Shown: positions 10,801-58,400 of the stretch, one piece after another
Layout of the letters: each line of letters opens with the position of its first letter
Numbering within the stretch: the stretch's first letter is position 1
Source: Klebsormidium nitens
Lineage: Eukaryota; Plantae; Klebsormidiophyceae
Length of the DNA: 64,000 nt
Direction: 5' to 3'
Assembly: GCA_000708835.1 (NCBI GenBank)
Contig: DF237025.1
Coordinates: 1-64,000, forward strand
The notes under the pieces: model-generated
The model's database searches: none
Told to the model about the DNA's origin: nothing
What the model saw: only the letters and a program-made list of their open reading frames with translations
Translations under genes and position numbers: made by a program

Positions 10801-13800
10801 TTAGTACCCAGTCCGCTGCTTCTTCCCCGGGCCCTCCTCATCCTCCCCGTACCTCACAAACTCCCCTCCTTCCTCTCCCTTGCTCCGCGCGTCCTTCTTC
10901 GCACTGATCATCTTTTCTATCCTGTGCAGCTCGTTGTTCAACTTCTGCTCCTTGCTTTGCGTCTTTCTCGTCTTGCGCCCGTCGGCCGTTTTTACCCCGA
11001 ACTGGAACGCGGCCTTTGGCGTTGCTTCCCGCTCTAGATGGTACCGGTCGTATTCCTCCTGCGTTTCGAAGTCGTACCGCTGCAACCGCTTCTCGCCCTT
11101 GGCGCCCAAGTCCATCTTGGACTTGTCCTCCTCCTCGTCGCTGCCCTCCAGCACCTCGTGGTTGTACTCCTGCTTAATACGAGTGTCATAAGGTCAGTGA
11201 CATATGCACAGCGGTAGACATTCCCAGCAGCCAACCCTGAAAATCAGCGTAAAGAGGAGAAGACTCAATGCCGGTTATTGACCCATTTCACCCTGTTCAC
11301 AGCTGCCCTCCAGCACCTCGTGGTTGTACTCCTGCGAAAAGCAGAGTTTCAAACTCATTTGTCAGGTCTTTGAATTTAAAGAGACTCCGAATATCGAATC
11401 TTGCGAATGTGGTAGCAAAGAAGACTTGGCGCCACCAAGAATGAAACATATTCATCCGTAGCAGTCGTTTAGTACCTCAAGGTTGCATTTCCAAAAGTAG
11501 TAGAATCTGGATAATCTGGGATCGTGTCACATCTAAGGATCGAAGCTCCTCCGACGAAGACACTGCGAAGTTCTGGGGCGACTTGATCGACGAACAGGGA
11601 TTTGTCTAATCCTCGTGATTGTACTCCCGAGGAAAAGGAGATCGTGCAGAAAATTCGCAGCGCTTTGTGTCGGAGAAGCAGCATTCAGCGACTGAAACTC
11701 TTCGATTGGTGCTCAGCAAAAAGGGCTCTCCTTCTTGATGCTGCCCTTCCAGCGAATCGTTTGCGTTCGAGAACCCCGCAGAGCGAGCAGCTCCTACGCA
11801 GAAACAAGCTCCTTTTGACTGGAACATGAAAAGCAAACTTTCGCAAACCGCAAACAAGCAAAACCAATCGCTCACCCCGTAGCCTGGATAGCACTCCGCG
11901 TACGTGTCTGACACGAACCCGGGGTCCTTCTCCCGCTCATCGCGGTCCCGCTGACGCAGGCTGGCGTCATCTCTTCGGAAAACGGACGCCGCGCCCTTGT
12001 CTTTGTCCGCCTGAGTTAACGGTTGGGGGCCCAGATCTTCCACGGGAACGGGAGGTGCTTCTGGGTAGGCTTCGTAGCCATAGCCATCCCCCTGGGGCGG
12101 GTAAGCTGCGCCGGGGACCGGCCCGTATTGGTAATCTGCACGGAAAGAGAAGGGTAATGGGCAACTCGGAGTAAGCTAGAATGGAAAAAACGTGCGGGGT
12201 TGTCAGGCCCAAGCGGGTGGAAAAGAAGCGTCACGAAAACGTGAGCAATATAGACATGGACACTTGAGTGCTACAACCTTCAGACACTTGGTATCACTCA
12301 GATCTTGCAAGTGCTTACCAAAAACGAGTGACCTCTCAACGGAGTCTGATCTATAAGTTGCAAATACAATCTCTCCTTCAAGAGATGAGCGGATCTCAGA
12401 CGCCGTGCGCTTCATGGCTAGGTGCTCTGAGAAAGATAAGAAGGTGGCAAAAGCTGACGGTCTCGCAGAGTCCGTGTGAAAACTCACTTCCGCTCCCGTA
12501 ACACTGCCGTGATCATTTCAACCCAAAAGATTAACTTACGCCGCTGACGGGCTTTCGCCTCAAGACCGTGATACGCACCCAGGACGGGTTGAAGCAGGCA
12601 TACCAGCCAAAGAAACTAGATCGGAAGAAAGAAAGCAGTTGGGGGCCAATGAAAAGACAACGTGTCCCGCTCCGCTACGCACCTGCTGGCTGCGGATACA
12701 TCTCCGCAGGGGGGTACCCTTGGTAGTACCCTTGCCCCACTTCCGGGTAAGCCATCCCATCGTAACCCCCCGGAGGCGCCTGCGGGCCGTGATCCCCGTA
12801 CTGGGGGGGTACCGCGCCTGCGTCCGGAGGGGGGGGCGGCGGCGGCAGCAGCGCTTCCTCCGGCTGGGGGGCCGGCTTTCCCGGCTCCGCAAAGTACGAC
12901 CCGCGGTCCCCGTTTTCTTGCCCCTCCCCCCCTTTTGCGCTTCCGCCTTTCTCGGGAACTTCTAGGGTGTACTCCCGGCCGGCGTCCTCGAAGATGTCGT
13001 CATCGTCGGCGAGCGAGGGTTTGGGGGGTTTGGCGTGGTTGTTCGTGTCGGTGCGAGGAGACGGCTCCTCGGAATCGCGGGCGGAGGCGCGAAGCTCGGC
13101 CACGCCGGTGGCTGCGTCGGAGGACGTCAGCTTTGCATCAGCATCATTGAACAATTTCTCAACGGCAGCACCGATTTCTTAATCGTAAGGGAGGACAGAA
13201 CAAGCGCGCGATCGTGAATCTTGTAAGGCATGCTTTCAAGCATCCAGGCATCTGGTTGCTACGAGGTCCGGGGTTAGACACAAGGACTAGAGTAGTGAGT
13301 GTTTATTGGTCGGCAAACTTTGCTCGCAGTCGGAAGACGTAATATCGTGTTGAGTCAAGCGAAAGCTTTACCAGTAGCCCATGCGGCCTTTTGAGTTGGT
13401 ACTCTGCGATGACCCGAGTACCTTACTCTCTCAGGCTGGATTTTCGCCATACACGAATCGCTTAACGTTCTGCTGCGGGGCATGAGAGGGAGCACCGCGT
13501 GTTCTGAATAAGTCAAAGAAAAGGTACAAAGATATTCACATGAACGAAATCCTATTGACAAACCGCCTTGGCAGTCTTCAAAGCGCCACCACGCCATGAA
13601 GGCGAGATGTGCTCGAAACTCTTCCACTGCTTTAGCTGGAAAAACACCATCTGAAGAAGCAGCAGAGGTGCTTACGTCTGACGAGGTCCCTGTCCCGCTT
13701 CTTGAGCTTTTTCAGCCCCTTGGCGGACGACCCGAGCCGCAGGTACGACATGACGCGCGAAATGCGGTCCAGCAGCAGCGCGTCCACGCTCGCATCCAGT

Positions 13801-22798: not shown

Positions 22799-25700
22799 AT
22801 GGGGACCCCTTTGGTGCAGCTGGGGTCCCCATCTGCTGAGCGCAGGAGCGCCTCAAAAGCTGCACAGAAGGCGGAGGCATACAGCCAGCTAGCGGAGAAG
22901 AGCCTCCGTGGCTCTTACAATGAGAAAGTTGCTGACATTCTCCAGAGCCACTCATACAATTTTGTGTTGTCTGACCCAACCCTGCCAGACAATCCAATCG
23001 TGTATGCCAGCCAGGGTTTTCTTAGCATGACGGGATACTCGAGGGAGGAGATTATTGGCCGCAACTGCAGGTTTCTCCAAGGGCCGGACACCGATCGACG
23101 CACCGTGCTGATGATTCGGGAAGCCTGTCGAGAAGAGAGGGCTGTGCAGGTGAGTGGCGTCCTGAGCTGCTGATAGGTCTTGAACCACAAATGGACGTTG
23201 TTTTGACCAGAAGAAGCTACCCTGCATTAGCTTGTCATTTACTTGTAGCCTACTTTGCGTTGTTAGAGCATTTTTGGGCAGCCACTTGAGGAGGGCTACA
23301 ACAAGACCTTATATCCGCTGACTGGAGCCTGATGTCAGTGAAAGGAAAGCTGCAAACTGGCGCCTCATGTTGCTCATCGTATTGGATGATTTGAACTGCG
23401 GATAAGCTTTCTCTTGGTGGTTTCATCTGTTTACCAGCCTCTCGTTCGTTCACTACTTTCCTTGAAAGGTTGCGGTTCTTGCTTATGGGATGTTTGTTTT
23501 TAAAGCTGTGACACAGCTCTCTTCCTTTGCAGGTAAGGTGCCACTTTTTCAGCCGCCTTCAGAAAGCTTTGTGTGACGTTCTTCAACCCTAGTTTTTGAG
23601 GGGTCAGTGTAGTTGTTTCAGGACTGAATACCTCTTTTCTGCTGGCAGGTGCGCATCTTGAACTACACCAAAGACGGCAAGCCCTTCTGGAACCTCTTCC
23701 ACATGGCGCCTATCTTCTGCAGCGAGACGGGCAAGGTGGTGCACTACATAGGTGAGTCGGCATGATGGCAGCATGATGTCAGCAAGGTCAGGGAGTGTGG
23801 TGTCAGTAATCTCATTTGTACTTTGAGTGCGTATGGCCGGCTTGGTTCCATAAGCACGCTGAGGCACATGCCTGTCAGCATGCATTGCCAGATTGTGACG
23901 TATGTCCTCTGCCGAGCTGCATTTTGCATGGAAGCTGCCGCAGTGTTTCTTTGTATGCAGCAACCTTAAGGAGGAGACACTGGTTAATAAGTCAGAGCAG
24001 AAATACCAGGCCAGGTGTAATTCGCCATGTGATGCAGTGAAGGAGTATAAAAAGGTTGAACGCAGTTTTTCTGTCAGGCGGTTTGATCATTTTAAGGGGT
24101 GCGTCAAACGTTTCTGCCTTCTGCTGTCGTGTGAGCTCCCTTCATGCTCCAGATAAGCAGGCTGCTCAGTGCATGATGAGTATTGACGACACTGAACACC
24201 TGAACAGGCTCTGCAAGCGTCCCTTCATCAGCCTTCAAGATGCTCGGTCTCCGCCAGTCTGCGACATTGACGAAGGTTTTGTACTTCATCCCGGGCGAAG
24301 GATTCTGAGCTAGAAAATCAGATCAACCGGACGGAGTAATATCGTTCGTTTCTTCGAAGCGAAACAATGCAATTTGGATCCCCGTCTCACGGACTGCGTT
24401 CTTTTTATTTGACTGAATCGGATGGATCGTGATTGGACCGCAATGGCGGTGACAGACCCATGCGAAGTTCTAGGCATCTGTCGAGCTGGGCAAACAAAAA
24501 AGCGGGGCGCGTTGTCATGAAAGACAAAATAACTCCAGCAAGGGTCTGATTCCTTAGAAAACCCCAAATCCTCTCCAGTGGCCTGGTCCAAAGTGGTCCA
24601 AAGCTTCAATACGATTGTTGGCGAGGGAACTCAAAAGGGAGAGCCGCTCTGTTGAGAGATCAAGAGCCGTCAAGCAAGCGCATAAATCCAAAACCAGGGC
24701 GTCCAAGGAAGTCGTAGAAAGGCGTTGGGATGTCCCAAACCGTCGCTCGTCCTTGCCCAAGCATCTCCATACAAAATCTTCTTAGTTCCAACAGTTAACC
24801 TGTCTGTCTCCCTTGCAGGTGTCCAAACGCCCATCAGTCAGTCCCTCGCGAAGTCCCCCGCATTCACTTCCTCCGGCGCTCCTTCTCCTGTCGGCAAACC
24901 GCCCCTGCCACCATCCCCAAGACCCGCCAATGGCCCTCCCACACCCCCACCTAGTACTGCGTCGCCACGACTAGGAAGCCCCGAACCTGAAACTACCGTA
25001 GAAGATACAGTACAGATTGCCGTCCCAATGGAGCTAATAGGGGGCTCCGCAGAGCCTGATTTGTCCCCCCCAGAAGACAGGGTTAAGGCGCTAACCGCAG
25101 TAAAGGCGGTGGTTGGGGATCTCAAGACGTGTGGGGAGGGGAAGGTGGAATTTGAGAAGGTGTCGCGGGGGGAGCCGTTGGACCCCAAGGCGGCGCGCGT
25201 GGTGTGCTCGTCGCTCGTGCTGACGCTGACCAAGATTCAGCAGAGCTTTGTGTTGTGAGTGGCAGTTTCTTCTTTGTAAGCGCCTTGCGCTGTCAAGTAT
25301 GTGGTAAACTCCGCACCTGGAGCTTCGGTCTCAAATTGTCTTCTGAGGAAAGACCTTTTGAAGCTCTTTCTTTCATCGAGAACGGAAGGTGTAGGGTATG
25401 GGGGACCTCAGTTCAATGTCAAGATCTTGAAGTGCGTGCATGGGTGTGTTCGAAAAGCATGGCCGATTCCATCGTTTTCACCTCTCTTTCTCCTTCCTTT
25501 CAGCTATGTCCATCCTCTGAACTTAGTAGCAGATGGAACAGTCGTTACAGGATGCAGTCTGCTTTCTTTTGGTATCTCCAGAATCAATAAAGCCGTACCT
25601 GAGGCCTGTGCTGAACAGTTTGGTGCGTGCTGTCTGTTGCAGGGCCAACCCTAACCTGGAGGACTGTCCAATAGTCCATGCAAGCGACGTGTTCCTTGAG

Positions 25701-27594
25701 CTTACAGGTAGATGCACAAAGTCCGTTCGCTTTTGGTTCTTGCTGCTTGTTTGATTAGTTGAGGGTGCCAGTATACGGTCTTCCAACAGTCCATTCCTTC
25801 CAATCGCAAGTCCTGGTCTTGGCCTTCAGTGTCCGACGAATGGTCCCCTCAGATGCGTTTCTCAGAATGCCGTTAGCTTCGCTTTCCTTTGCCTCCGTTA
25901 GCTTCCCTGCTGGTGCCCTGCCGCTCCTTCTAATGTCTCGTTCTGTACCAACCCAGCGTATTTCCTATTTTGCCAGATGCTATAAGAGGTCGCTCTCGTT
26001 GCTTCACAGTGGCCCATGTTTACTCGTAGACATGACAAGTTCAACAGTGCACATCTGCATTGAAGATTCTGGGTCAGCAAACGGCTAGTCTGATCCTGAA
26101 CGCCACCCCCTTTTGAACTCTTACAGGTTACCCCCGCGAGGAGGTTGTCGGGCGTAACTGCCGCTTCCTCCAGGGCCCCGAAACCGAACCGGAGTCGGTG
26201 CGCGAGATTCGGGAGGCAATTGCTGCGGACAAGCCGTGCACGGTGCGGCTGCTCAACTATCGGAAAGACGGGACGCCGTTCTGGAACAACCTGCACGTCT
26301 CGCCCATTCGCAACGCTTGTGGCAAGGTGGGTCCTATCTTCCCTGGTTCAAACAAAACAAAAACGCAGGTCAGATTGGAGCGCATACTTAACAGCACGCC
26401 CGTCAGCCTCCACGTGTATTTTCTTCAGGTTTTGCATTGAGCAGGGGTGTTGGTTGTTCCCGTGAATTGTTCCCTTGAGTGCATAGCGAAGAGGCTTATG
26501 TGAGGTCTCTTTTAGCGGTGTGGAGGTCTGTGGGTCCAGGGATGTCAACTCGACTTTTCTGTGAATGGAGCAGTGGGACGTAGTTTTTTGGTTTCTGGAT
26601 CCCATTAGAGGGCGGCGCTGATGTACCTGTATTGCTGACTGCATCCACGCATCCACGTTTTTTTCAAAGGTTGATATTGTGAGTTTAGACGTAGTTTTGT
26701 GTCCACATCTCGATTTGTTGCTCCATACTGATTCAGCGTCCTGTCTGGACGCTAAGTTTGGCCATCACCTTCTCTCCACTTCTTTCCCCTACTGTCTGCG
26801 GATTCAGGCGCAGCCTTACCTTTTGACGGGAGCCTCTGTGCATTTACAGCGTGCTTTATTCTTGACTGTGTACGCTTTTTGACTCTGTACGCTGCTTTTA
26901 TCTTGATTGGTTTTTCTCTGGTCTTTCTGGCTTGAAAGGGCAAGGACGAGCGACGGCCGGGGAGATTCCCATGCCTGTTCCGTGATTCGGACGCCCTGGT
27001 TCCGGAGTCATGGGCTTGCTTAACGGCTCGGTTCGCCACCAGAGCGGCTTTCTGCATTGGAATTGCTCGCCAACAGTCCCACTGAAAGCGAGTTACTCTG
27101 CACCAGGCCACTGAAGTTGTCTATGGAGATTAGACCCTTGCTGGGAATGTTTTATCTTCCATGACAAGCCCCCCACCTTTGGTTGCCCAGCTCGCCAGGT
27201 GTCTGGACTCTCTCATGGGTCCATCACCGCCGATGCGTGCCAATCACGATCCCTCCGAATTAGCGGAAGTCGAAGAACGAACTCCCTGAGAAGAAATCAA
27301 GCAGCTCAACTGCTTTATTCCTCTATAAACGAACGAATGGATCGGATCTCTCCTGTTGGGCTGAACTTACCCATTTATGACATGATGAGAGACAATTGTA
27401 AGTTGAGTCTTTGAAATTCGTACCCGCAGGTTGTTTACTACTGCGGGGTACAACTGGACGTGACGGCCGCAGACGGCATCAGCCCCCTCGACCGGGGCAT
27501 GAGCTCCCGGTTGAAGCAACTAGGCGCCGTGGGCGCAGTAAGGGTCGCTGTTAGAGCGCTCGACGGATCCGGTCTTCGGCGGAACATGTCGTAG
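22799..27594 (+). CDS. LLP: LOV/LOV (PAS/LOV) blue-light receptor protein LLP/PLP, 6 exons
   Basis: Exons 22799-23149, 23649-23751, 24819-25254, 25643-25707, 26127-26326, 27430-27594. Two LOV domains, each with [10 protein letters not shown]-terminal [17 protein letters not shown] typical of LLP. No kinase, F-box or bZIP domain. Confidence 0.9.
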
Positions 27595-28997: not shown

Positions 28998-31900
28998 TTA
29001 CTTCTTCAACCCGTCAAGAAAACCCAGAACTTTCGTCGCCACTTCTTGCGGAAACTCCTCGTGCGGCAGCAACGCCCCTGGAACGTCACCGTATTCGGCG
29101 ACGCCCTTGACTCCCTTGAGGGCGTCCATTTCGGCCTTGGATCGCTTGGGGCTCTGGATCGACTTCAACACGAAGAGCGGCACCTTGCTGTCCAGGCTCG
29201 CAATGTCGCTAAGCAACTCGTCCCGCGTCAGATACTGCACGAGAATTGAGACGGACTTAGCTACTGGTGAGCGCTTTTCAGGGGTCAAATTTTGCACGGG
29301 GTTAAGCCAGGGTCGGACGGAACGAAAAATCATCGTGGTCAAAGCTGCACCGGATCACAAAGTGCTAAGCCAGATCATTTCAGACGAACCCCTTTGCAGT
29401 GGAACGCGAGAACTGAGTTCACATCCGACCAGATTGTCTGTAAGCCGATTGAGGCGATGGAAGCAGCAGAAGATGATGACATGTCAAACGTAAGCCAACC
29501 GGTGTTGATCGACGTGCAAGTGGGCATCCGACAACAACGGAGCAATCTGGGGTTAGGTTCTTTTGAGATCTTGATTTAACCATGAGATGATATGCTCAAT
29601 GATAGAGAATCAAAGACGTTAGTCGACAAATCCTGCATGCCGATTGAAAGGGAAGGCTTAAGCTTCACTGACCGGGTCGAGATCGCCCGTGACAAACGCC
29701 GCTGGCGCAAAGCGCGCCCCCTCACGCTGCGTGAGCTCCGTCCGAATGTTAATGAGGTCGTCCGTAATATTGTCCTTGCTGGAGTAGACGTGCGTCCGGT
29801 ACTGGTTGCGGATGTTCTTAGGGCTGGACAGTACGAACTTGTACAGGGCCCAGCCGAGACCGGGGGACCGCAACACCGTCCGCAAAATGTTGTACCTGTA
29901 GGAGGTGTCCAAAATGTCAACACCTTTCAAAAAGGCAGTTGTCTTGGGGCTGGGCAGCACGAAATCGGGCAAAGCCCAACCGAAACCGGGGGAGCGGAGG
30001 ACCGTCCGCAGAATGTTGTACCTACACGAAGTGTCCGAAACGTCAGAACGGAAGTGCTGAGTACAGAGTCTCTTGGGAGTGGCGAAGAAGAATCTGTACA
30101 AGGCCCGGGTTCGGACAGAAGGGAGCGGAAGACCGTCCGCAGTTAGCCTGTTAGTGTTGTCCGCATTGTCCGCGGTGTCGAGAACTTTCAGCGTGCTAGT
30201 GTTTTGAAAGCTGGACAAGACCACATTTTAAGGCCGCGAAGAGGCCAGGGGAGCGCAGCATCGTCCGCAGAATGTTGTGACTATATGAAACGATTGGGAA
30301 TAATCAATGTGTCGATGGGAGGCCATAAAATGCTTATGAAGGTCCTTCTTGCGGAAGAGGACAGAGCTTTACGCGCCCAGCCTGAACCATGAAAGCCGGA
30401 CCGTGCAAAGACTGTTGTAGCTGAAAGAACTGTACGCAATTCACAAAATGAGCGACATCCAAGGCAGGTATAAAATTGTATAGGACTCGGAAAAGCGCAG
30501 GACAGCCGATGACTCCGTCCCTTATAAAGATAAGGTCAGGACCCTTGATTGTCACTCCCTTAGCAATGTCAATCATTCTGCAGAATGGCGGGGTTTCCCG
30601 GAATCAAAATCATAAGTCACACGAGCGACGGTGTGCCGAGCACCACACGGGGTGGGTATATCTAGACCGAGGCACGGAGTTGCTCCAGAACAGGAAATTC
30701 AACCTCTAGATTCCGAATGAATTAGTCACGCGCGTACCAGACTGAAGGTACTGATCAGCACAAGTTGACGAACTCGATACGGCACTAAAAATAACAGCAA
30801 AGCTACCTTCAAAGTCCCGTTGCATAGGATCACGTGAGTCGGTTCAGAATTAGCGACCATTTTGCTAAGGGCCCATCAAAGATTGGCTTAATTTACCGTA
30901 GCGACATTCCATTCGCACTAAGTTCATTGATTTTAGGCCGTTGCGAAGAGATCAAAGTTAACCTTCAGCCTTGGTGCGGAATTGCGAAATCGAAATGAAT
31001 TCAGATTAAGCCTGTAAACATGCAAAAACAGGCTTAAAACAGCCAGAAATTGGATCTTGCGACCAAAAACAAAAGCACCCCATCAGTCGGTGCGAAATGG
31101 GAAAACGTTCGAAATCAATAATTCGCACCAAGGTGGTGCGAACGGCAATGTCGCTACGGGCACTGCACCGAAACTGGGAAACTCGCTTCAGAATCTTTCA
31201 AGGTTTTGCGACAAACTTTTGAACAAGTCCCTCAACCAACGTGGCAGTAGGGCTTGAAAAAAGAGCGCATCGACCTGTCACCCCAACCGAACAAACAGGA
31301 TCAAAAGTGGACCAGGCCCCTGGAGCTTTAATAGACTGATCACTCTTTTCAAAACCAATGAAGGTGACGGAGTCGCTTGAGGCCAATGCTCAAACGGGAT
31401 CCATGACCAAATCTTCCTCCTCGGGGCTCAGCTGTACAAGTGTATCTCGCAAAATACAATTTTATAATCAAAATGTGATCCTGGCTTAGGTTCTGACGCT
31501 CTCATCAGAAACTTGGATGCTCACCTGTTCTGAACCTTGGGCTCCCGACCAAACACAATGGGCAGTGGTCCCGCCCATGTAGGCGCCACTGCGATTAGCG
31601 CCTTGGCAGAGAGCAGGCCCTGCTTGATGGCCTTGACAACTAGGGAGGGGGAGTGCCCTGCTCCAACGATGCTCACGGTCTGGCTCTTAGCGAGGGGGCC
31701 GTTGGAAGCGGATACGAAGTCACCGATGAACTTAACCTGGAGGCAAAAGGTCGGAACCATGATAATGTGTCACAGGGCAACTGTTCAGTCCTTGAATTAA
31801 TTAAAAGTGATCCAGAGCATACAGTCGCTCCTATTGCTGGGCTGGGCCGAGTGCCACGAATGATGACCGGATGTTACAATGAATTCAGAACGTTAGGTGG

Positions 31901-42678: not shown

Positions 42679-45600
42679 ATGGCGCCGACCACTGAGTTGC
42701 GCCAGAGGAAGCCCGGCAAAGGCGAGGGCGGCAAAGCAGACCACTCCGACACCCCACCGGAGAAGGAGAAGCCTAAAGACGACAAGAAGCATGCCCACAG
42801 GAAGTCGAAAAAGGCGGCCCGTCCCCACTGGGGATGTTACGACGCATTCTGTTGGATGATAGGCAACCTGACCGTGCTGTTTTGCATCCTGTTCATAGTG
42901 TCGAAGTTTGTTCCGAGCAAGAAGGCGACGGAGTTTGTGATTGAGAAGATCACGGGGCAGGCTCCGCCTCAGACACCGGGTGAGAAGCTGCGCGCAGAAG
43001 GTCTACGGGTAAGTGGTCTGGCAACAACGAAGAAGCAGTGAGTGTGCGTTTGAACATTGACGTTTTGATGGCCGATGTACTATGTGCCGGACTGGAGACC
43101 ACTGCAGACACGGAGTTTGCTAACGAGAGTAGTCTATGATGGTTCCTTTCTTCCACTGTCGGTCTGCAGTCGTCTGCAAAGGTTCTCCATAAACTTTTTG
43201 CTTTGATATTCCTGGAGAATCATTGTTGGCTGCATCCTTTGCGTGTGGACTGTACTTATACGGCGGTGCAAGCAATGGTCTTGCACTTCTCTCTCCCCGA
43301 CTGGCATCAAATTGCACGTTGTGCAACCACTGTCGCAGGTCTTTAACGTCGTTCAGCCTCTCAAACTAGCACCTTGTCAAGACTGTTAGATCCCTGTCAG
43401 CATTGGTTCTGGCAGAGAATGCTTCAATCCTGATGTTTAATCATGGCGTTCATTTGCGCTAGAGCTATCCTGCTGTCCATCCAGACGCTCTAAACCTCAT
43501 TAAAGCAGGCGTGCTAAACTTTCACCAGAATCGAGCGGGATCTCCTTGCTGCAGTTGAAGCATCCGCTTGTATTTATGCCGGGCGTTGTCACGGGCGGTT
43601 TGGAGCTGTGGGAGGGCCGCGAGTGCGCCGAAGATCTCTTCCGGCAGCGCGTATGGGGGGGCGACTTTGCTGACAAAGTCCTGTCCAAGTGAGCGATCCG
43701 AAGTATGCTTTTATCAGGACCTAAGTTCAGCTCAGATGCAGACCAGATTCTTACTGTGCTCGAAGGCCAACTTTGCTTCATTTCCCAGCCCCCTTTCCTG
43801 CCTTTCTGTTGGGGTCCGCTTCTCACCAGCGTATGGTGCATATCGCCAATCTTTCGACAGCGCTCACTGAATCCTGACCTGGCCGGTAGATGTCTTTCCA
43901 GATGAGGGATCCTGTTGGTTCTTTGGGTCCGCTTCTCTATACTTCTGTAGATGGTACATAGAGTGTCTCCAATCAGTTGCGTTGCAAGGTGCAAGCACTT
44001 GAGCTACTGAGTTGCGGTATCGATGGCTTCCCGTTCGAGTTCAACTCATGTATATCTGTTGATCTGACCCAAAAGGGGCAGCTTTCTGACAGTATACTTC
44101 AAGCGAAGGACGGAGTGAGATGCTCAAGATTGCGCATCTTCTTCTCAGGCCTTCATACTTGTGCTCGTTGCATTCAGATAGGGGATCATGGCGCAATCGA
44201 AGTTGTGAAAGCAACCCCTTGAGAGCATTTACGAGTCTTCCCTACCCGAGTCCCTTGAGCGCCAAGAATGCTGACGTCACAACTCCCTTTCCCCTCAGGC
44301 CGCACTGTTGGATGGACCACTTGATCCTGGACAACGAGACCGGCCTCGACCCCCCCAACGTGCGCGTGCGCTCCGTCCCGGGTCTAGTTGCGGCCGACTT
44401 CTTCATGCCCGGATACTTTGTGTGGGCCCCAATAATTGAGAACGCGGCCCGGCTGGGGTACGACCACAAGAGCATGTGGATGGCGGACTATGACTGGCGG
44501 CTCTCGTATGGCAAGGCCGAGGTGGGTTTTTGCGACCATCTGCGTGGGAGATCTGTTCACTTTGTGGCTCTGCTTTGATGTCCGTTTGTATTGGTAAGAA
44601 GAATCTGACAAGGCGGGGTAGGAGCTCAAGAGCATGTGGATGGCGGATTTTGGCTGGCGGCTCTTGTATGGCAAGGCAGAGGTGGGTCTTGGGACCATCT
44701 GCGTGGGAGGTCTAATCACTTTGTGTATGTCTTTTTGTTTTGGTAAGAAGAATCTGAGAAGGCGGGGTAGCAGCGGAAGAGCATTGCGGATTTTGGCTGG
44801 CGGCTCTTGTTCGCAAAAGGGCGAGGTGGTTTGTCCATCCCGTGTCCGTAAGATATTGATCTATATCAATGCTTGGTCTCGATTTGACAAAAAATGAGGA
44901 GGTCGTGCTGCGTTGATCCTGTACAGGTAAAAGCATGTGATAGCAAACCATGACTTGCGGCTTTCAATTTCGCGCAGCGTAGGTGGATTCTGAACCTCGT
45001 TTCTGTAAAAGTTCCATATATGACGCGAATGCTTCCTAGTCCGGCCGACCCGTGGGGCCACCAGAGCTTCTGGCCTGAGGCCGTCCTTAGCTGGAAGGCC
45101 ACGTGGAGTACTTTGATCGAAGAAAAGGATCTATAGCAGGTCGATGGAGCTTGTTGTAGCCTTCTGCCTCGCAAGTCCGTTCGCTGAAGCTGAGGGGGGA
45201 AAGTACAATTTACTTTGCTTGCGGGAGCACGACGGCCCGTGTCGTGCCCTAATATGGTAAAATGAGCTCACGGCTGATGTGTTTATGATATGGGGTGTCC
45301 TTGTGGACAACTGATTGCAGGCTCAGGGTTAAGCACGATTGAGCCCGTTTCCCTCGTGTGGCGGAATCTGGGTGGTGCATCGAAGAATCTCAAGATATTA
45401 CCACCAGCCCAAATAATGGCGATCGTTTCCGCAGCCAAAAGCCCGACTCAAATACCTCTCAACCTCACAAGAGACAAGACCATTGTCTAACGCTCGCGTT
45501 GAGCAGAAGTGTGATGGCACACGGACCCTGATTAAAATAAAATTCCCTCCGATGTTTCTTTCAAATGGTACAGTATAGGATCAGGATCTTTTTTAAGTCT

Positions 45601-48600
45601 TTAAAAGAATACATTGAAAAAAAAGGGCTAAAGATGGACATCAACGATCCCGTTTCTATCCAAAAGGAAAACCCGCCCACTCTTGCAACCTGGGGACAAC
45701 TTGCCATTGTGAATTGGCAGTACGAGTCACTCGAGTTTGGACGACTCCGGACCCCTGACAACGTCCGTTGCTCTTGCTTGCAGAAGCGCGACGGCACGCT
45801 GACGCGGCTCAAGATGGTGATTGAGACCACGAAAAAGATGAACGATGACGAGAAGGTGGTTCTGGTGCCGCACAGCATGGGCTGCATATTGACAATGTAC
45901 TTCCTCAAGTGGGTCGAGGCGCCCGCGCCCCACGGTGCGTTATATTCCTCCCGCGCCTAGTTCCTCGTATGTTCATTTTCCGTTCCCTTGATGATACGTT
46001 TGTTTAGAAGAGAAAGCGCAGCTCAAGGTATATCTCAGATAAAGCTCTTGTTCAAACAATGAACAATGAAAAGCGGAAATGCGAGTCCGCCGACTGAAAT
46101 TTCCGAGCCCTGCGAGGCTGGAGAAGAAGGTGGTGTGGATGAATCCAAGATAGCTGCGCTGAAAGTATTGGTATTGACGACGCTTCGTAAGGAGTCGCAT
46201 CTCCGCCGTTCACTGAGCAGTGCACACGTTCGTGACTCTGGTCTCTGTCTTCCTTCACCCTCTTCGCTATCACCCTTCTCTTCGAGCCCCCACGACTTGC
46301 GGTCAGCCATGGTAACTTGTGACTCATTCTGACGTCGCAACACCTCACGAATTTTCCTCATTTGGAGCAGGCGGCGGCGGCGGCCCCCACTGGGTGAATG
46401 ACCACATCCACGCAGTTGCAGGAATTGCGGGGCCGTGGCTCGGCGTGGCTAAGGGGGTCACCGGGCTGATTTCGGCTGAGGCGAAGGACGTGGCGGAACT
46501 CAGGTGAGCGGCGCGCATTGTGACATAAGCTTCAACCATATGTTGAGGTAGGCCTATGCTGAGTTCGACAACATCCCGGCTCAAACAAACTGAAATGCTA
46601 GTTCTAAACTTGACTTGCTCCGCACGCGCACCCACCTTAAACTCCCAAAGCAACCCCTGCTCGTCTCCATGGCATTGCCTAAGTCAACATAGCCGTAGCT
46701 CAACCTGGAATCAAGTGCACTGGTGCGACCGTCACGAATTGCTTCTTTGCAAAGTTGGTCGACTCTTTTCTCGAATCTTTTAAGGCTCCCCTACCCCTGC
46801 CTCGGCAAAGCCAGGCTGTTTCGTCGAAGTAAAGAGGCGCCTGACGTAGCGCTAGCTCAGGTCGCTGAGAGGACCGTTCTCCATCTCCCTTATAGTCTGC
46901 CTTCTCAACATCTCTTCCCTTCTATTTTGCAAGGCCATGGGACCCTTTATCGTCAACACTAGGGCTTGGGGCTGGCCGACGAGTGGAAAGAGGACCACTT
47001 TCCACCCGCCTGAAAAACCGCCATCGTAGAACGCTTTTTCTTTCATGATGCAGGGCGATGGATCCGTTCATCGACAGCGGTGCGTGGGGGCCCACTAATG
47101 ATCTAAAGTCGACCGCTTTGAAAGTGCGTCAGTTCAGCGCACCCCACAGCGCTTTTGCAGGCAGATGGCCCCATTCATCAGAAGCGGCACGTGGGGAACA
47201 CTAACGAATGAAAAAAGGGACCGCTTTCACACCCCCCCAAACCATTGTCTTTGTAGAGTGCCCATATTCTTGATGTCTCCAAAAGACCTAGTTTCTGAAA
47301 CGCCCGTTCTTTCCATTTCGGCAGTGCGATGGCCCCCTTCATCGACAGCGGCGCGTGGGGCACACTGATGATACAAAGACGTCCACTGGGAACACCATAA
47401 CTTCCGGACCACCCCTTTCTTCTGCAAATCTCAAGTTTCACCCCCCCTCTCCTTTTTTTCCAGGGCGATGGCCCCCTTCATCGACAGTGGCGCGTGGGGC
47501 ACGCGCGCGTTCCAGCACGTGCTGCGCGTCAGTCGCACGTGGGAATCTCTCACGAGCATGCTCCCGAAGGGGGGTAACGCAGTCTGGGGCGACGTGGACT
47601 GGTCCCCTGAGGAGGGCTACGAATGTTGCCCCCCGAAAAAAGAAGAGGACGGCGAATTTAAGGATAAGGACGTCGGGCCGTCCGGCAAGCCGGTGGCGCA
47701 CTACGGGCGGTTCCTGTCGTTTGGACGGGAGCTGGCGGAGCTGGAGAAGGGGAAGGTCGCGGAGCGGGTTGAGAAGGTGACTTAATGGCTGGGTTTGGGC
47801 GTGGGTTTAGATCCGATTTTGGGTTTGGATTTGATTTTGGCTTTGGCTTTGGCTCTGGTTCTGAGTTTAGGTTCCGGTTTTAAGCTGGGTCTGGGTTGGA
47901 TCTAGGTGTGGCTTCGGCTTTGGCTTTTGCTTTCTTCCGCCTTCGGCTTTGGTTCTGGGTTCAGCTTCGGGTATGGGTTTTGATTTAGGTTTGAGTTCAG
48001 GTTCCGCTTTGCGTCGGTGTTTGAATCTAGATTGCTCTGCCTCTGGTGACTGCTTGCGATGCTGAACCGGACCTTTGGCTTGGTGCGTGACCAGATTACC
48101 CGTTCCAATCTGGCTGCAAACCTGCCCGTCCGTGCAGTAGTCGCACCTGAAAATGCTACATTTGGTTTCTTCTGCACCTTCGTTACGCGGATGTATGATT
48201 AAGATCCATAAGGCTTCCCCAAAATGATAACTCCTAGAACCTGGCCTGAGGGTAAGCATGAGCTTCGACTTTCCAGAGTCAACGAACTCGATCCTGGCAT
48301 AAGTGAACGTATGCCCTGGACTATTGTGCATTTCACCCGGACCAGCCGCACCTTCAGATGGGAATCTTCATTTCTCATGCAACACATAGAACAGCACATC
48401 CGAATACTCGACGGTTGTGCAATCGAAGATAGAGGCGCTCTTATTTCTCGAGACAGAGTCTTTGTCAATTGAGGTATGATCAAATCCAACTTGCAAAAGG
48501 ACACAGCCCTGCATGTTACAACAGCTGTGTACTTGAGGACTGGAATCCGGTCCTTATGGATCAGAACGTTTGGCCAGATGTTGTCTGGCATCCAGATTTG

Positions 48601-51524
48601 GCAGGATTTAAATCAATTGAATGGTCCTGTGCAGATGATGAAGGAGCCGCTGCTGTTCGTGAACCAGACGTACTGCCAGAGTGACGTGTGGACCGAGTAC
48701 CAGCAGCTGAGCACCGACAAGATGCAGGCAAGCGCTTGAGCCCACTCAACTGAATCTTTGTGTTTCCTGAACCGAAGACACTGAAGTGAAAGGTACCTTC
48801 GTAATGGTCGACGGAAGGATTGTTGGTGGAAACTTGGTCCTTGCAGAACACCCCTCTGTTGCCAGGGGCCAGTCGACTTTGTCTTCCGTGATCGGTGGGT
48901 TGTAAGAAGGACGATTGGACAAGCGAGATCAAAGTAAGAACGAGGTAGCTCGTAGTCCAAGGCCGGGTTCTTCGTCGGTTGGTCAGTCCAGCATCGATGA
49001 AGATACTACCGTTTCGTCAAAGCTTTCTTTGCTTTGTGCCCCCCTAAAAGATTGCGTTGGACGACTTGGATGGACATTTGTAAAGCCTCTTCATGAAAAA
49101 CACGCATACAATCGTCGAACTCTTTTTCGCTATGCAAAGCCGGAAGGAGCTTGCGCGGTGCAGCGTGTTCGTCTATGTATGCACCTTGCTTGCGGCGACC
49201 AGGATCGATCATCCCAGACTTTAGATTGAGCAAGCACACGACACCATTGCCAGACTCTGCTTTGCGTGCCTACAGGATCTTGTGCGCTCGCAGTGTGTAC
49301 AACATTATGCATCTCGTGCTTCGGGCTACCGGTACCGGAAATTTGAAATAGCTCAATAATGAATAGGGATACGACCTCGCTAAAGCAAAGGTTTAGCGTT
49401 TAGAAAAGCAAGGTTTTCAGGCTTTTAACTTTTTGTTCTGCGACCCACAGGAGATTGGGCGCCAGGGCTGTGCAACGTTATGCTCGTGTCTGAGGCTATT
49501 GCGATTGACAACTCAGAAGCTCGACACTAATCGAGGATTCTGACTCCGTCGTCGGTTTTTTTGGGGGATTCCGGGGTTTTCAAGGCTTTAGAATTCTGAC
49601 TTTGCTCTGCGTGCCCACAGGAGATTGCACGCCGCGGCGTGTACAACATCGAGCAAGCGCTGGACATGCTGCGCGAGATCGCGCCCAGTTTGATGAAGCG
49701 TGCGGACGAGAACTGGGGCTTCGGCGTCGCGGACAACCCGTCGGCGCCCGAGTATGCGGACAACCCCAAGTACTGGAGCAACCCGCTGGAGACCACGTGA
49801 GAGGACGAATTTGTTGCACTCTTTGGCTAGCATTTTTTCTGGCTTCAATGTAGCGAAGCTTCGTTCAGAACAGGGTACATCGTGCTGCATTTGGGTAGCG
49901 AGTCGTGTTTGATTTGATAGACAGCAGAGCGAATTAGCAGCTTGACGAAAATGGGTCAGTCCTGTCTGGTCAGAGTTGCAACCGTTCAGCAGACTGCCAT
50001 GAAAAGGCCGTAGTACACCTTTTGACTTTTCTATTACCGCATTATTGCATTCCGTGGATCATACCGCAGACCAAAAAGTGAACGTCAAAGAGCACCGATT
50101 ACGGATCCGGAGCGTGCCTGCTTGCCCTTCGTAACTTCGCTCGCAATCTCATTTAAATGTCAACTTATGTGACTCGGCCCCCCGGTCGTCATTACCTACC
50201 CACCACTCAATGGTGTGAATACCCCCTGCAGGCTGCCGTTCGCCCCGGACATGACCCTGTACTGCCTCCAGGGGGTGGGCATTCACACCGAGCGGTCGTA
50301 CATTATGAAACTGTCGGACCTGAACGAGAGCTGCGCGCTGCCGTTCCGGATCGACGGCACCGTCTCCGGCAAAAACGAGGGCTGCCTCAAGAGCGGCGCA
50401 CAGGTCAGTGCGTGGAGGCTGACTGACTGCGAATAGATAGTGCCGAGTTTGCGGGTTGCAATTAACTAAGGGTTTGGGTGCCGGATTTAGGTCGTTTTGG
50501 GGCTCCGAAATTTGTCAGGTTTTAACTTGTGGGTTAAAGAGAGTTTGGCTGCCTGAAAATGGCGCGTAAGTCTGCCTGTGAAGGCTGTTTGCAAGGTTCG
50601 GAGTACTTCAGTGCACGCGGGTTGGATGGACTACGGGACTCGGGTACCGAATCAGGCGGGTCGGAGGGCTTTAACTTTTGGATATGGTCGAGATTTCGAA
50701 TGGCGCACAGCTCAGTGCGTGGAGGCTTCGCTGCATCCTTTGAAGTATTTACGTATGCAAAATGTGTTGGCTTGAGGGTTTGAAGTTCTGGGCTGCGGCG
50801 TTCTGGAAGCTTTTGAAAGTGCCCCAAACTTTTTGATTCAGTCATTTTTGGGTTGTCTCAAGCCGTGCGGAAATGAATTCATGCAAATGCATGAGAGATT
50901 TGGTGGTCTGACTGACAATTGCTGCGCTTCAAAGATTTCTGGATGCTAACGTGGGCTTTCAAGCGCAGGTCAGATCTGCGCTGTTATTGGAGCTGAATGC
51001 GTTGTGATCTGTTGCGTGGACTATGTGCCTGCGCGTGAACGCGGTGCGTAAAGAATAGAACAGCAGCCCTTAGGACCATCGGAAACGCAATGCTGATTGG
51101 AACTCTCCCCTCGATACAAACTCAAACAGAGATGCAGCCGCTGACGTCATTTTGCTTGTTCCAGTTTTCGGACGGTGACATCACGATCAACTTGGTGAGC
51201 GCGGGCTACATGGCGGCGAAGGGCTGGAAGGGGCGCACCAAGTACAATCCCGGGGGGGTCAAGGCAGTCATGCGTGAGTATAAGCACGTGGCCCCCGCAA
51301 ACTTTCTGGAGGGCCGGGGGACGCAGAGCGGGAACCACGTGGACGTCATGGGTAATTATGCAATGATTGAGGACATTTTGCGGATTGCCGCGGGCCAGAC
51401 GGCGGAGCAACTAGGAGGGGATCGGTATTACTCTAAGCTGCCGGAGTGGGCGGAGAGAGTGAAGATTGATGTCAAGTTGAAGCAGACGAGTTCATTTGCG
51501 CAGAAGCTGGGGATAAAGTCCTGA
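42679..51524 (+). CDS. PDAT1: Phospholipid:diacylglycerol acyltransferase (LCAT family), ~10 exons, one GC-AG intron
   Basis: MAPTTELRQRK, TM segment after WGCYDAFCWMIG, KHPLVFMPGVVTGGLELWEG, CWMDHLILDNETGLDPP, YDWRLS, catalytic VVLVPHSMG, LPFAPDMTLYCLQGVG, SDGDITI, GTQSGNHVDVMGN. Confidence 0.95.
44468..45108 (+). repeat. Tandem ~145-160 bp copies of exon end plus donor plus intron start in a PDAT intron
   Basis: Donor GT at 44522 (live), 44682, 44826 and 44983, plus a faint copy at ~45062-45108. Copy 2 matches 55/60 nt over the exon-end part. Confidence 0.92.
46934..47505 (+). repeat. Four upstream copies of an acceptor plus exon start (AMAPFIDSGAWG) in a PDAT intron
   Basis: Live start 47464; copies at 47325 (38/41 nt), 47161, 47054 and 46934. 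Confidence 0.92.
47787..48010 (+). repeat. Degenerate hexamer (ggyttt/ggctct-like) low-complexity tract in a PDAT intron
   Basis: gggtttgggcgtgggtttagatccgattttgggtttggatttgattttggctttggctttggctctggttctg...; 6-nt periodicity. Confidence 0.75.
49251..49660 (+). repeat. Two upstream copies (~170-175 bp period) of an acceptor plus exon start in a PDAT intron
   Basis: Live ctctgcgtgcccacag|gagattgcacgccgc at 49621. Copies ttctgcgacccacag|gagattgggcgcc at 49451 and tttgcgtgcctacag|gatcttgtgcgc at 49276. Confidence 0.85.
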
Positions 51525-54515: not shown

Positions 54516-54535
54516 CCTACCTACCTACCTACCTA
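54516..54535 (+). repeat. (CCTA)5 microsatellite
   Basis: cctacctacctacctaccta. Confidence 0.85.
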
Positions 54536-55465
54536 TGCGTGACCCTCTCCTGCTAGCAAGCTTGGGCTGCGATAGATACCGTACACCGTGTCGCCCGGTC
54601 GCCGGGCCGGCAAATAAAACGCATAAGCTATGAGCAGGACGGGGATCCCCCGGCAGCGTCGGACCAACAGGTTACGAGACAGGGGGTTCAAGACAGGGAT
54701 GCGGTAGCCCCCCAAATGTTTTTCAACGAAAACGTAAACATGTGTGACCGTGATTGGAGTAAATACGCAATGATCGAGCCGAGAACCTGATTCCTAAATC
54801 CGAACACTGCAAGCCTGGGAAAGAATGGGACCAGAGGCTCTGTGATTATTATTAGGGTATCCTGCCGTAACCCAATTTAAGGTTCACGCAGAACGTACCG
54901 CTACGTATACTATACGTGCCAGACGGTTGCGATCTGAGATTAAGCGATGTCCTTATTAGTTCTGTTGCTAGGCATGCATAGCTGACGTCGATATATGTGG
55001 GCTACGATTGCTGCATAGCTAATGTCAATATGTGTGAACTAGCTAAATTCGATGAGTCCAATACTGGATCTCAGAGGTTGGATCTTCTGATTGTATGATA
55101 ATGCCGTAGCAAAGTTCGTCTTCTTTAAAGCGCCTGCATGAGAACCGGGCATGACATGCTCGAACACCCAGAGAGTATAATGTAGCGCAAATCGTCAAAG
55201 CTGGCATGAGAACCGTGACATGCTTAAACACCCGTTCATCTCTGCATGCTGTTCACTTCGATTCACGAGCCTTGACTACACGTGTCAGGTTGCTCTTTTA
55301 GTCCAAACAGTTCCGGTAAGCTCGTAAGTGAATCAAAGCAGAAACAAACCGTGCCTGTCTCTCATGACGATGTTATAGTGCGCAGTTAGGCTATCACTAC
55401 TGCAAGCCTTGCAACTTCACATCGCCCAATAAATTACGGATTCTCCTATACTTATGACTCCTGAG

Positions 55466-58400
55466 CTATTTCGATTCTGCAATGCCAGCAAAGTGCAAAC
55501 AAAGCCTTTGATCTCGTCGGTCTCCCCAGCCCCCATAGCCTGTGTAATTGCACGGTGTAAAATCCTGCTGTCTAATCTCAATGCCCCAATCTGGGGACGG
55601 TGGTGGGCGGTCCATCTGCTCTAAAGCGAACGTAATCTTCTCGCTTTCTAAGGCACAGGCTTCGGAGTCCACATTAAGGCCCCGGTTCTCGTGCAGCCCG
55701 CACCTGCCCGCATGGATTACACTCGCGCCTGCACAAGCATCGGCCGTTTTCAGCTCAAATGGTGTTCAGGAATGAAAAGCTAAGGCGACAAGACGGGTTG
55801 AGGTTCCTGAAGTGACGAGGGGGGTGCGGGCACAACCGCAATAAATGTCGAGACCAGACTAGCGGTAACTAGTTGCGGTCTTAGGGAGCACGCAGAGATT
55901 GTCACTCGCAATCTGGCAGTATCGAGAGCGCAGGTATTCGCCACGACTTCCCCTAAGATCAGCTTGGCACGAAGTCTAGCGACTCCGTCCCTTAACCCCC
56001 AGCTGAAACGGTACGAGTGATCAACGTGAACGAAAAAGGTGTTCATACAAGAGGAGGACAAGTTCGATGCAGCAGGGCTACGGCTTACATATTCACTCCA
56101 CTGGAAAGAAGCCTCTCCCTACAGGCTTCCCCCTCTCACCTGCCGCGTGCAGGCTCAGCGTCCCCGGCGCCCAACTCGCCATCACCGCACATTCAAGCGT
56201 CCAGTCCCACCCATAGTCATCAAACCCACAGAACTTGCGGGCTTGCGCCTTTATCCTCCGCCAAACCGTGCGGTTAAATGCGTAACCCATATTCGACATC
56301 CGGTCAGCGACGAAGTGCTCTCCGCCTAGCACGCCCGGCGAATGGGCCCGGTGGCCGGTGCTCAGGCTGACTGCGACGCAGTCCGGGCAGCGCGCGTTCT
56401 TCACGGCAATCAGGACCTGATCGGAACGGAACCAGAACGGAATCAGCACCAGGACAGAACGGAAATGTGGACGGATGCAGATGAAAACAGCGAGCGTGAT
56501 CTCCAAGGCGACGAGGAGGTGGGGGGTTCAGAATTTAACCGTGTGAGGGGAAGAAGTACTGAGACACTGAGCGGACGGAACCGTAAGGGACATGAAGGGA
56601 GCGGGAAAAATGGAAAATGAATGATGCGATTAGAGAAATGGAAGCCAGGAACCGAGCGGGAGCGAGCGGGCAGAAAGTCTGGGCAATGATTACGCTTCAA
56701 GTCGATAAAAACCACAATCAGAAGATTGAAATCGTTTGGAGGGAGGGGGGCCTATAGGGGCGGACACCAGGGTTGGAACTTCGAAACGGAGCTGGACCAG
56801 AACAAAGTCACTTAGAATCTTAGAAAGGGGGAGAAAAGTAACTGGAGGCATATAGGCAACAAGACCAGTGCTTCTCTCGCTGGAAAGGAATTCAAAATTC
56901 ACCAGAATGCAGCCGCAACAAAGCTGAATGAACTGAACGGACGACTTTGATGAACGGGTCGAGTGACAGGAATGAACGGAACAATGAGATGAATGGGAGA
57001 CTTGGGCACGAAACAACGGAACGAAATAGTCTGAGCTCACAAGCCCGGAGCTTTGCAACGGTAATCAGATGTGGAAGTCAAGATCAAAATGCAGAAAAGT
57101 TGCGGGACCAAGCGGAAAGTAAGGACGAATACGGAATGAAGAGTCCGTGATTGACAATCATCAACAAGTGATTCGTTGATGAATCAGGAACCGTGGATGA
57201 AACGAAAAGGCGAAGGGAAGAAAAGCGGATGGCAGCAGAGGAAAGGAGCGGAAGGTCTAGGAGGGAATGCGGTCCGAGCACAGTCGGACCTGAGCGGAAG
57301 AACGGAATCAAGGCGGAATGCCGGACGAGTGCGTACACGTGCAGGAGAGCGGCCCCTTACCTGGAGTGTACGATAAGCGTTGGGAACCACTAAGTGGTCC
57401 TCTTCAAGGAAACATATGTGGCCGTCAAAGTTTTGGAACTCCTCCATCTCGTCCCACACTTGGTTCATCAACCAGAACCAGTGGTGCTGCGGAATAGGAA
57501 TGAAAGCTTTCAGTAAGCGAAGGAAAGAATAGCAGAGTCCGAATTTGCTCTAATATATCAGGTCAGACGACCTGACGCGATCCCGAATGCTTGTAAGCGA
57601 CTTCGGGATTCGCCACGAAAGAACGACAGAGTGTTCCTGGTGCATCTTAGGGTGTGCATCGAAAGAGAGACGGCTTTTCGAAGCTGGTAACTGGAGAGAT
57701 TCGGTCTCACTTCGACTACTTGTAGGCAGATGCTCTATCCTCAACAACATTCACAATTCAACAGTTTACCTCTTACGACACACAATTTCAATGACCAGTT
57801 TTTCAGAGTCACTTTCAAGGCGAGCTAGCCCTCCCTGCCTAGTACGCATCCAAAAGACGCATCCAAAGATAAGTATCAGCCGACGTGGCAGATCCTGATT
57901 AGGCCAGTCAATTCTCACTGAACGACACGATTAATGCAGATCTTGATTGGGTCAGTCAATGCGCGCTGAACAACAGAATCAACGCTTTGCTCTACTGTAA
58001 GAGGCATCAACGACCGAAGAGGGTTTATGCCTCACTTTCAGGCCCACGAAGAAGGGGTTTCGAAAGTTGTCGTACTGGTCTGAATCCCCCGTGCAACCAT
58101 CTGGCGCTGGTGTTATTGGAGATGGGGTTCCGGGGCAATCATCGGGGGAGCGGCTGGGAAAGCTGTTTTTTGAAGTTGTGCGGTGAGAACGGAGCAAAGA
58201 TCTGGGGAAGAACGGGCGTTTGCTGAAGTAAAGATCGCAAACTTATGAGCCATGTCAAGCATTGAGCAACAGATTATAGTTTGAGGATAGAGCGAATCAA
58301 GGTCTGTTGCTAAGACTCTTGATACATCTGCTGATATGCTTACACAGCACCCACATTGGTCAATTGGTCCCACAACAGTTGTTGCTAAGGCGTTCAAAGA

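Follow-up and report, generated by a model that had tools for sequence, protein, structure and literature searches.

One of the closest described systems is a minisatellite in intron 7 of the human F7 gene, in which the first 37-bp element spans the exon 7/intron 7 boundary (Borensztajn et al., 2006, PMC1557585). It is known from this one human locus, its 37-bp units are short and highly similar, and it lies on the donor side only. Introners of algae and fungi (e.g., PMC4457414) are lineage-specific, 100–200 nt long and shape introns on a genome scale, as dispersed families that insert as new introns. A third type is intron gain by tandem duplication, where splice signals are included in a local duplication and splicing removes the additional copy; these are isolated two-copy cases that yield a new intron, and in the potato case the duplication likewise crosses an existing intron-exon boundary. 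Paired nicks produce small tandem duplications in plants. The gain of intron length and the choice among equivalent splice sites are old questions, and work on them has so far relied on single cases such as F7 intron 7.

The window analyzed here was a stretch of 64,000 nt from the alga Klebsormidium nitens (contig DF237025.1 of assembly GCA_000708835.1, positions 1–64,000 of the forward strand). It contained seven junction-anchored arrays, each of two to five copies spaced 107–175 nt apart, in the genes for RED, an alpha/beta-hydrolase and PDAT (four introns, five junctions; Table 1). The degraded intronic copies of a live exon–intron junction, arranged head-to-tail with others, were termed echoes. 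Live PDAT sites were defined by joints in RNA contigs assembled from three runs (X5, X6, and X7), which covered introns A–F only.

Table 1. Junction-anchored arrays and RNA-supported PDAT introns in the window. A slash marks the splice junction; distances in nt from the live site are given in brackets.
Feature	Position	Strand	Live site	Echoes	Exon-derived portion	Basis
RED/IK last-intron acceptor array	11140..11641	-	..AAGCAG/GAGTAC, first exon base 11169	11302-11351 (AG kept); 11611-11640 (AG to GG)		self-alignment; exon via RED_C Pfam family
Alpha/beta-hydrolase acceptor array	29799..30440	-	CCTACAG/GTACAAC, first exon base 29895	29942-30045 (126); 30054-30170 (252); 30200-30288 (385); 30331-30440 (525); AG kept in 4/4	~80-95 nt	self-alignment; homologue P0005
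PDAT intron A	44522-45783	+				RNA contig joints, three runs
PDAT intron B	45935-46370	+				RNA contig joints, three runs
PDAT intron C	46504-47463	+				RNA contig joints, three runs
PDAT intron D	47777-48634	+				RNA contig joints, three runs
PDAT intron E	48728-49620	+				RNA contig joints, three runs
PDAT intron F	49797-50231	+				RNA contig joints, three runs
PDAT intron A donor array	44455..44989	+	exon end 44521/GT	44615-44709 (+160); 44772-44832 (+304); 44929-44989 (+461); GT kept in all	~52-67 nt	RNA joint 44521/45784 in X5, X6, X7; alignments
PDAT intron A acceptor array	45215..45830	+	first exon base 45784	45503-45538 (-277, AG kept); 45215-45272 (-559, AG to GG)		RNA joint; own-intron z = 11.5
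PDAT intron C acceptor array	46925..47502	+	first exon base 47464	47322-47363 (-139); 47153-47199 (-303); 47051-47089 (-410); 46925-46972 (-531)	~39 nt	RNA joint 46503/47464; alignments
PDAT intron E acceptor array	49126..49650	+	first exon base 49621	49432-49476 (-170); 49253-49305 (-345); 49126-49168 (-474, weaker); AG kept in all		RNA contigs; own-intron z = 17.8
PDAT intron G donor array	50395..50727	+	exon end 50403/GT	(+166, weak); 50702-50727 (+307, GT to CT)		donor placed by ORF and GT only

Tiled self-blastn of the window gave 24 local direct HSPs vs. one in the distant-tile control, and in a seedless local self-alignment, 91 probes reached a score of 18 or more, vs. none in its distant controls. 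Twelve RNA-verified PDAT junction sides were compared with their own introns and with non-cognate introns. Four of the 12 showed an own-intron excess (z = 11.5–33), and none of the 60 non-cognate comparisons had a score above 13.5. An earlier note on this DNA had claimed that introns hold copies of the junction they adjoin and that each family is private to its own junction. Both claims were borne out, the first at seven junctions and far above the controls, the second because whole-window self-blast returned only local, junction-private pairs, with no dispersed or cross-family matches, and because junction matches were cognate-only. The note had named five unrelated genes; RED, the hydrolase and PDAT stood, but the SFR2 and GnTII matches in the window were at noise level in three scans and on inspection by eye. 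The GnTII region contained two short non-junction duplications. Tandem Repeats Finder missed every array in the window, since the copies are too diverged and bear indels.

The arrays were not an assembly artefact, because intron contigs of low depth, built from independent RNA studies, reproduced them with 0 differences; in PDAT intron C, those of X5 and X6 spanned 46475–47490. In addition, 98% of the sampled window words were present in DNA runs. A further run labelled as DNA of another organism (X10) was RNA-like with two haplotypes, and it held no intron sequence from the divergent haplotype.

In PDAT introns A, C, and E, the terminal unit spanned the live junction, the further units were intronic, and the site in use lay at the exon-side end of the array in the RNA contigs of all three runs. 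Echo-site splicing was not found among introns A–F in these contigs, although low-level use is possible because rare isoforms are lost from assembled contigs. Across all echoes, 22 of 28 had an intact GT or AG. The expectation that the innermost site is used thus held for every PDAT array covered by RNA contigs, and exon definition is a plausible candidate for the rule that would keep the copies silent. Measured from each live junction out to the farthest detected echo, the arrays together took up 2071 of the 4844 intron nt (43%) in introns A–F (44522..50231). The donor of intron E, at 48728, was of the GC-AG type. The array in F7 intron 7 begins on a live donor junction, and its authentic site, the one selected next to the exon, is followed by identical or nearly identical pseudo-sites that remain silent; the algal arrays share this layout. 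Unlike the F7 units, the algal units are 96–175 nt long, are 65–95% alike and lie next to donors as well as acceptors, and the arrays are found at many junctions, in unrelated genes and in several related algae.

The RED exon was identified through the RED_C Pfam family on ORF P0020 of a relative, and conservation with the relative L003 began at 11172. Echo 1 of this array was identical to the live site at 34 of 34 positions across the junction, and its pyrimidine tract was better than that of the live acceptor. Splicing at this echo acceptor would bring an early stop. In the hydrolase, the homologue P0005 gave one alignment only, to the downstream (live) copy, and the segment was single-copy there. 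The hydrolase unit of 126 nt corresponds to 42 codons; echo 1 leaves the frame open, and its first 18 codons showed nine synonymous differences vs. one non-synonymous difference. A close relative of the hydrolase locus was not found among the sequences searched.

Contigs of three relatives, including L001, L002, and L003, contained the same type of array at partly different junctions. The arrays at the PDAT intron A acceptor, the PDAT intron E acceptor and the last intron of RED were present in the window only; those at the PDAT intron B acceptor, at both ends of intron D and at one SFR2 acceptor were present in L001 only; and a different RED acceptor array was present in L003 only. In these cases, direct tandem copies with splice signals were specific to the window, L001 or L003 and missing from a sister lineage. 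Lengths of orthologous introns differed accordingly: intron B of PDAT measured 436 nt in the window vs. 946 nt in L001, and intron E 893 nt vs. 529 nt. The same PDAT introns were shared by the window, L001, and L002, and only their lengths differed. Compared with intron gains by tandem duplication, the number of introns stayed constant and an existing intron became longer, with up to five copies and at many junctions. On an evolutionary scale, the array process is still under way.

The echoes of PDAT intron C had a common breakpoint, GGGGCAC/ACTRAYGA, after ~39 exon nt. It was identical in the window and L001, where copy numbers differed, which indicated that the founder of this array was older than the split between the two. 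The three echoes of exon e in L001 likewise had a common exon end followed by a common intron sequence (..CTGC/GAATGAGGATGAT), and they carried a common T that was absent from every live exon. This derived T showed copying from echo to echo. The common exon and intron breakpoints, together with derived states shared by echoes, indicated that arrays grow mainly by amplification of one founder unit. Recurrent local duplication had been proposed as the way in which introns lengthen in this lineage. The lengthening, with the junction included, was confirmed, but repeated fresh duplications were not, since breakpoints were common within arrays. A lariat or cDNA origin was dropped; the branch-point motif ACTRAY stood at unit starts in PDAT intron C and was inconsistent elsewhere.

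Spacings over all arrays ranged from 96 to 175 nt (median ~141) and were specific to each array, e.g., ~99, 104, 131, 133, 154, and 172 nt. The suggested nucleosome- or Okazaki-like unit size was consequently not supported, as the spacings were broad, differed from array to array and had no sharp mode. Similarity was said to fall with distance from the live site. This was a tendency only: the nearest echo was more similar than the farthest in seven of 10 arrays, but the pooled Spearman coefficient was −0.16 (p = 0.40). Differences between echoes and live exons at codon positions 1, 2, and 3 numbered 82, 66, and 134, a spectrum close to the one expected if echoes decay neutrally and the live exon drifts at synonymous sites. 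Stops or frameshifts were present in some echoes. The spectrum and these lesions indicated that echoes decay neutrally. The same spectrum led us to reject coding constraint for the echoes as a whole, although hydrolase echo 1 was suggestive. Preferential loss of GT and AG, which the note had proposed to look for, was also rejected; the data leaned slightly in the opposite direction, with 50 of 56 such positions kept (89%) vs. 79% at the flanks (Fisher p = 0.08). The exon-derived part of echoes was ~11–95 nt long and comprised a single exon edge and its splice site. No whole exon with both splice sites was copied, which sets the echoes apart from mutually exclusive exons. Near-perfect patches of 26–42 nt occurred within diverged units in three nearest echoes (RED, 34/34; PDAT C, 40/42; PDAT G, 25/26, with the loss of GT as the sole change), and they exceed what pure neutral decay explains.

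We consider it probable that local tandem duplication, anchored on splice junctions, left the arrays behind as relics without a function. A segment of ~100–175 nt across an exon–intron border would be duplicated as a founder. Splicing would continue at the copy next to the exon, so that the gene survives and the extra copy is absorbed into the intron. Through unequal exchange or slippage during replication, the two-copy repeat might then grow or shrink as an array, and the conserved live exon may patch it by short-tract gene conversion. The intronic copies would decay neutrally, and the net result would be a longer intron with a row of mostly intact, unused decoy sites. The small tandem duplications that arise from staggered breaks (PMC8355091) or paired nicks offer a plausible route for the founder; those described are mostly shorter and have no known tie to splice junctions.

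Junctions are favoured more strongly than random duplication and tolerance would predict, and this counts against the relic explanation as it stands. A census of only ~97 kb gave 15 junction arrays and one ambiguous case; no array of similar period lay clearly away from a junction. It is possible, though we hold it only tentatively, that the mutation itself is targeted, i.e., that breaks or nicks linked to transcription, splicing or chromatin at the borders seed the founder duplications. Polymerase pausing, R-loops, non-B DNA at pyrimidine tracts and positioned nucleosomes would be candidate causes. This proposal concerns the cause of the bias only, in mutation rather than in tolerance or retention, and does not conflict with the remainder of the relic explanation. 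It is consistent with the junction anchoring of nearly all arrays of period 96–217 nt, with the shortness of all clear non-junction local duplications (48 nt, 70 nt and a 12-nt unit), with the excess of acceptor arrays, which adjoin pyrimidine tracts, over donor arrays, and with small tandem duplications being a well-established product of staggered-break repair (PMC8355091). However, neither a breakpoint motif nor a fixed length of the exon part was seen, and unit length was array-specific. Retention bias could also give part of the excess, since the conserved live copy supplies homology for conversion and unequal exchange. It is a similarly tentative proposition that intron growth in this lineage is driven chiefly by junction-targeted duplication coupled to transcription, splicing or chromatin, instead of by mere tolerance of random duplication, with the conserved live exon edge as a master copy that would keep re-seeding or converting the array.

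A function of the arrays is improbable. They might supply decoy or alternative sites whose regulated use makes splicing unproductive, carry splicing enhancers or silencers, or bind U1 and so protect long introns. The intact GT/AG of most echoes, the 34-nt identity and better pyrimidine tract of the RED echo acceptor, the early stop that its use would cause and the open frame of hydrolase echo 1, in a unit of 42 codons, could be read in this way, and the RED echo at 11336 and the hydrolase echo at 30021 would be the best candidates for regulated use. Against this, echo sites were unused in the PDAT contigs, position and copy number were not conserved between close relatives, the hydrolase homologue has a single copy of the segment, and the codon spectrum, stops and frameshifts point to neutral decay. 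A dispersed introner-like mobile element or an assembly artefact is very hard to credit: the periods fall within the introner size range and no other support was found, whereas every unit holds exon sequence of its own gene, no dispersed family occurs in the window, the RNA-study contigs and DNA runs reproduce the copies, and the same architecture is present in relatives assembled from other samples.

A description of junction-copy arrays was not found in the literature searched, the coverage of which was incomplete and which offered single-gene analogues only. The growth of junction-anchored arrays is real, and it is apparently a previously undescribed route of intron lengthening. One small genome here provides many natural arrays of intact decoy donors and acceptors, at known distances and on both sides of exons, with copy numbers that differ among sister species. 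Rules of splice-site choice, such as exon definition, scanning and the requirement for a branch point, thereby become testable, and the rate and mechanism of intron expansion become directly so. The echoes also store older exon states, as in L001, where echoes retain G at a position at which the live exon now has A.

Local direct repeats with spacings of 107–307 nt were found at 11.1, 29.8, 44.5, 47.0, 49.4, and 50.4 kb of the window by seed-and-extend and blastn self-comparison. They formed head-to-tail arrays of echoes, that is, intronic copies of an exon-intron border. Tandem Repeats Finder detected none of the arrays claimed in the window. In tiled self-blastn, 24 local HSPs in direct orientation were obtained versus one in the control, in which tiles were 20 kb apart. 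In a seedless scan of the window, in which 70-nt probes were compared with the following 75–800 nt, 91 probes reached a score of at least 18 versus none in the controls. No dispersed matches of the repeat units appeared in the whole-window self-comparison; each repeat family was therefore private to its own locus, which agreed with the earlier note that the families belong to their own junctions and not to one dispersed mobile element. The comparison of junctions with their own and non-cognate introns that the note had proposed was run on PDAT at small scale, with probes that combined 45 nt of exon and 25 nt of intron: four of 12 junction sides in the window matched their own intron (z = 11.5–33), and 0/60 non-cognate comparisons scored above 13.5. 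Among the five genes said to carry echoes, arrays were confirmed in RED, the alpha/beta-hydrolase, and PDAT, and not in SFR2 and GnTII, whose junctions in the window gave nothing above noise. The GnTII region contained two short tandem duplications without a junction copy (periods 48 and 70 nt; 57888–57971 and 55122–55233), which were ~80–83% identical and located in non-coding parts.

The PDAT introns were fixed by contigs of three RNA runs over window positions 44350–50349. In these contigs, the used donor at 44521 was the first copy of its array, and the used acceptors at 45784, 47464, and 49621 were the last copies of theirs. Use of echo splice sites in PDAT was not seen among these contigs, which drop rare forms. 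The donor of the following intron, at 50403, carried a fifth PDAT array. At 46475–47490 and 48699–49586, the sequence was matched with 0 differences by low-depth intron contigs that came from studies outside the genome project, and 98% of the sampled words were present in DNA runs; an assembly artefact was therefore ruled out. The GC-AG donor of intron E (CAG/GCAAGC) was kept in three species (window 48728, L001 11225, and L002 1467; L001 and L002 are contigs of relatives). Run X10, labelled as DNA of another organism, showed spliced joints and two exon haplotypes 3–6% apart over 44350–50349, as RNA would if it came from a mixture or hybrid.

PDAT introns in the window and lengths of the orthologous introns in L001
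Intron	Position	Strand	Evidence	Length in window (nt)	Length in L001 (nt)
A	44522–45783	+	RNA contigs	1262	595
B	45935–46370	+	RNA contigs	436	946
C	46504–47463	+	RNA contigs	960	1674
D	47777–48634	+	RNA contigs	858	822
E (GC-AG)	48728–49620	+	RNA contigs	893	529
F	49797–50231	+	RNA contigs		

RED was located on the minus strand, and the RED_C family was recognised on the ORF of a relative. Two echoes lay upstream of the acceptor of its last intron (first exon base 11169), one at 162 nt with a stretch of 34 identical nt and an older one at 457 nt. The pyrimidine tract of the nearer echo acceptor (11302–11351, minus strand) was better than that of the live acceptor, the one in use; if used, the echo acceptor is predicted to end the protein after 18 codons, ahead of the RED_C domain. 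In the alpha/beta-hydrolase gene (minus strand), four acceptor echoes lay at 126, 252, 385, and 525 nt. A homologue aligned once, with the downstream copy, which is therefore live. Echo 1 (29942–30045, minus strand) preceded the live acceptor by exactly 42 codons and had an open frame, and its first 18 codons differed from the live exon mostly synonymously. Use of its acceptor would be predicted to add 42 residues in frame.

Protein searches with ORF-sized queries recovered contigs of relatives, which were fragments from other assemblies: L001 (12.2 kb, collinear with the window across SFR2 and PDAT, exons 84–95% identical), L002 (2.9 kb, exons ~80% identical), and L003 (18.3 kb, containing the RED gene, exons 77–86% identical). 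All three had the same array architecture, partly at other junctions than the window. In L001, PDAT echoes were found at the intron A donor, the B and C acceptors, and the donor and acceptor of D (z = 8.5–32), and one SFR2 acceptor had an echo that the window lacked. L002 had a donor echo after exon d. The RED gene of L003 had a clear acceptor array at a junction where the window had none; this contig also had a 126-nt repeat of ambiguous status and a minisatellite with a 12-nt unit. The lengths of orthologous introns in the window and L001 corresponded to the arrays. Immediately 3′ of the PDAT exon d donor, where L001 and L002 had a donor echo, the window had a degenerate TTTGGN tract with 6/12/18-nt periods (47786–48055). 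Downstream of RED, L003 11206–17811 contained retroelement ORFs encoding reverse-transcriptase, endonuclease-like, and capsid-like domains; nothing equivalent to these ORFs was present where the window aligned.

All echoes of one array shared an exon stop position, followed by common intron sequence. The PDAT C breakpoint (GGGGCAC/ACTRAYGA) occurred in four window echoes and two L001 echoes, and the L001 exon e breakpoint (..CTGC followed by GAATGAGGATGAT) in three echoes, which had in common a T absent from all live exons. These common breakpoints and the common T indicated one founder duplication per array, with later copies derived from echoes. In the proposed mechanism, a founder duplication would start the array and echoes would template the further copies. 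The founder of the PDAT C array is older than the separation of the window and L001 species. The exon-derived part was constant inside an array and varied from ~11 to 95 nt among arrays. Spacings of adjacent echoes were 96–175 nt (median ~141); in four larger ones (266–295 nt), a decayed copy was probably skipped. The period was specific to each array, which argues against the single nucleosome-sized unit suggested earlier.

In ~97 kb, 15 arrays were at junctions, one was ambiguous, and none of similar period was clearly non-junctional; if arrays were placed at random, no more than roughly an estimated third would fall at junctions. Three nearest echoes had a near-perfect 26–42 nt patch across the junction within a far more diverged unit (RED, 34/34; PDAT C, 40/42; PDAT G, 25/26, the sole change being GT to CT). 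The patches resemble the outcome of short-tract gene conversion or of templated patch repair, with the live copy as the source, and a conserved live copy that refreshes neighbouring echoes could account for some of the bias towards junctions.

In the literature, the nearest parallels are confined to single loci, namely the human F7 intron 7 minisatellite, whose first unit spans the donor boundary and whose pseudo-sites are silent (PMC1557585), introns created by tandem duplications in Drosophila (PMC2891723), and a potato RdRp duplication that runs across an intron-exon boundary (PMC4974935), whereas the alga had arrays at many junctions. The literature search found no account of a process that pervasively forms arrays at the two sides of exons in an alga.

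Differences between echoes and live exons at codon positions 1/2/3 were 43/45/88 in the PDAT arrays and 82/66/134 when the hydrolase and RED were included. This third-position share (47–50%) is about what is expected if the echo decays neutrally and the live exon drifts synonymously. Several echoes had stops or frameshifts. GT/AG was intact in 22 of 28 echoes, and these dinucleotides were not lost more often than their neighbours, a test that the note had proposed: they were kept at 50/56 positions versus 387/491 flanking positions (Fisher p = 0.08). The claimed fall of similarity with distance was retained in part: the nearest echo was more similar than the farthest in 7/10 arrays, and the gradient was weak (pooled Spearman −0.16).

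Two other repeats were observed in the window. Weak internal repeats at 62056–63640 (periods 126, 320, and 1440 nt) lay in a coiled-coil-like gene, inside a long open frame, and are coding repeats, not junction echoes. An inverted pair of ~375 nt with 72% identity (24385–24758 and 26938–27291) enclosed ~2.2 kb without a clear coding ORF and could be either an old element of the foldback or terminal-inverted-repeat type or an inverted duplication.
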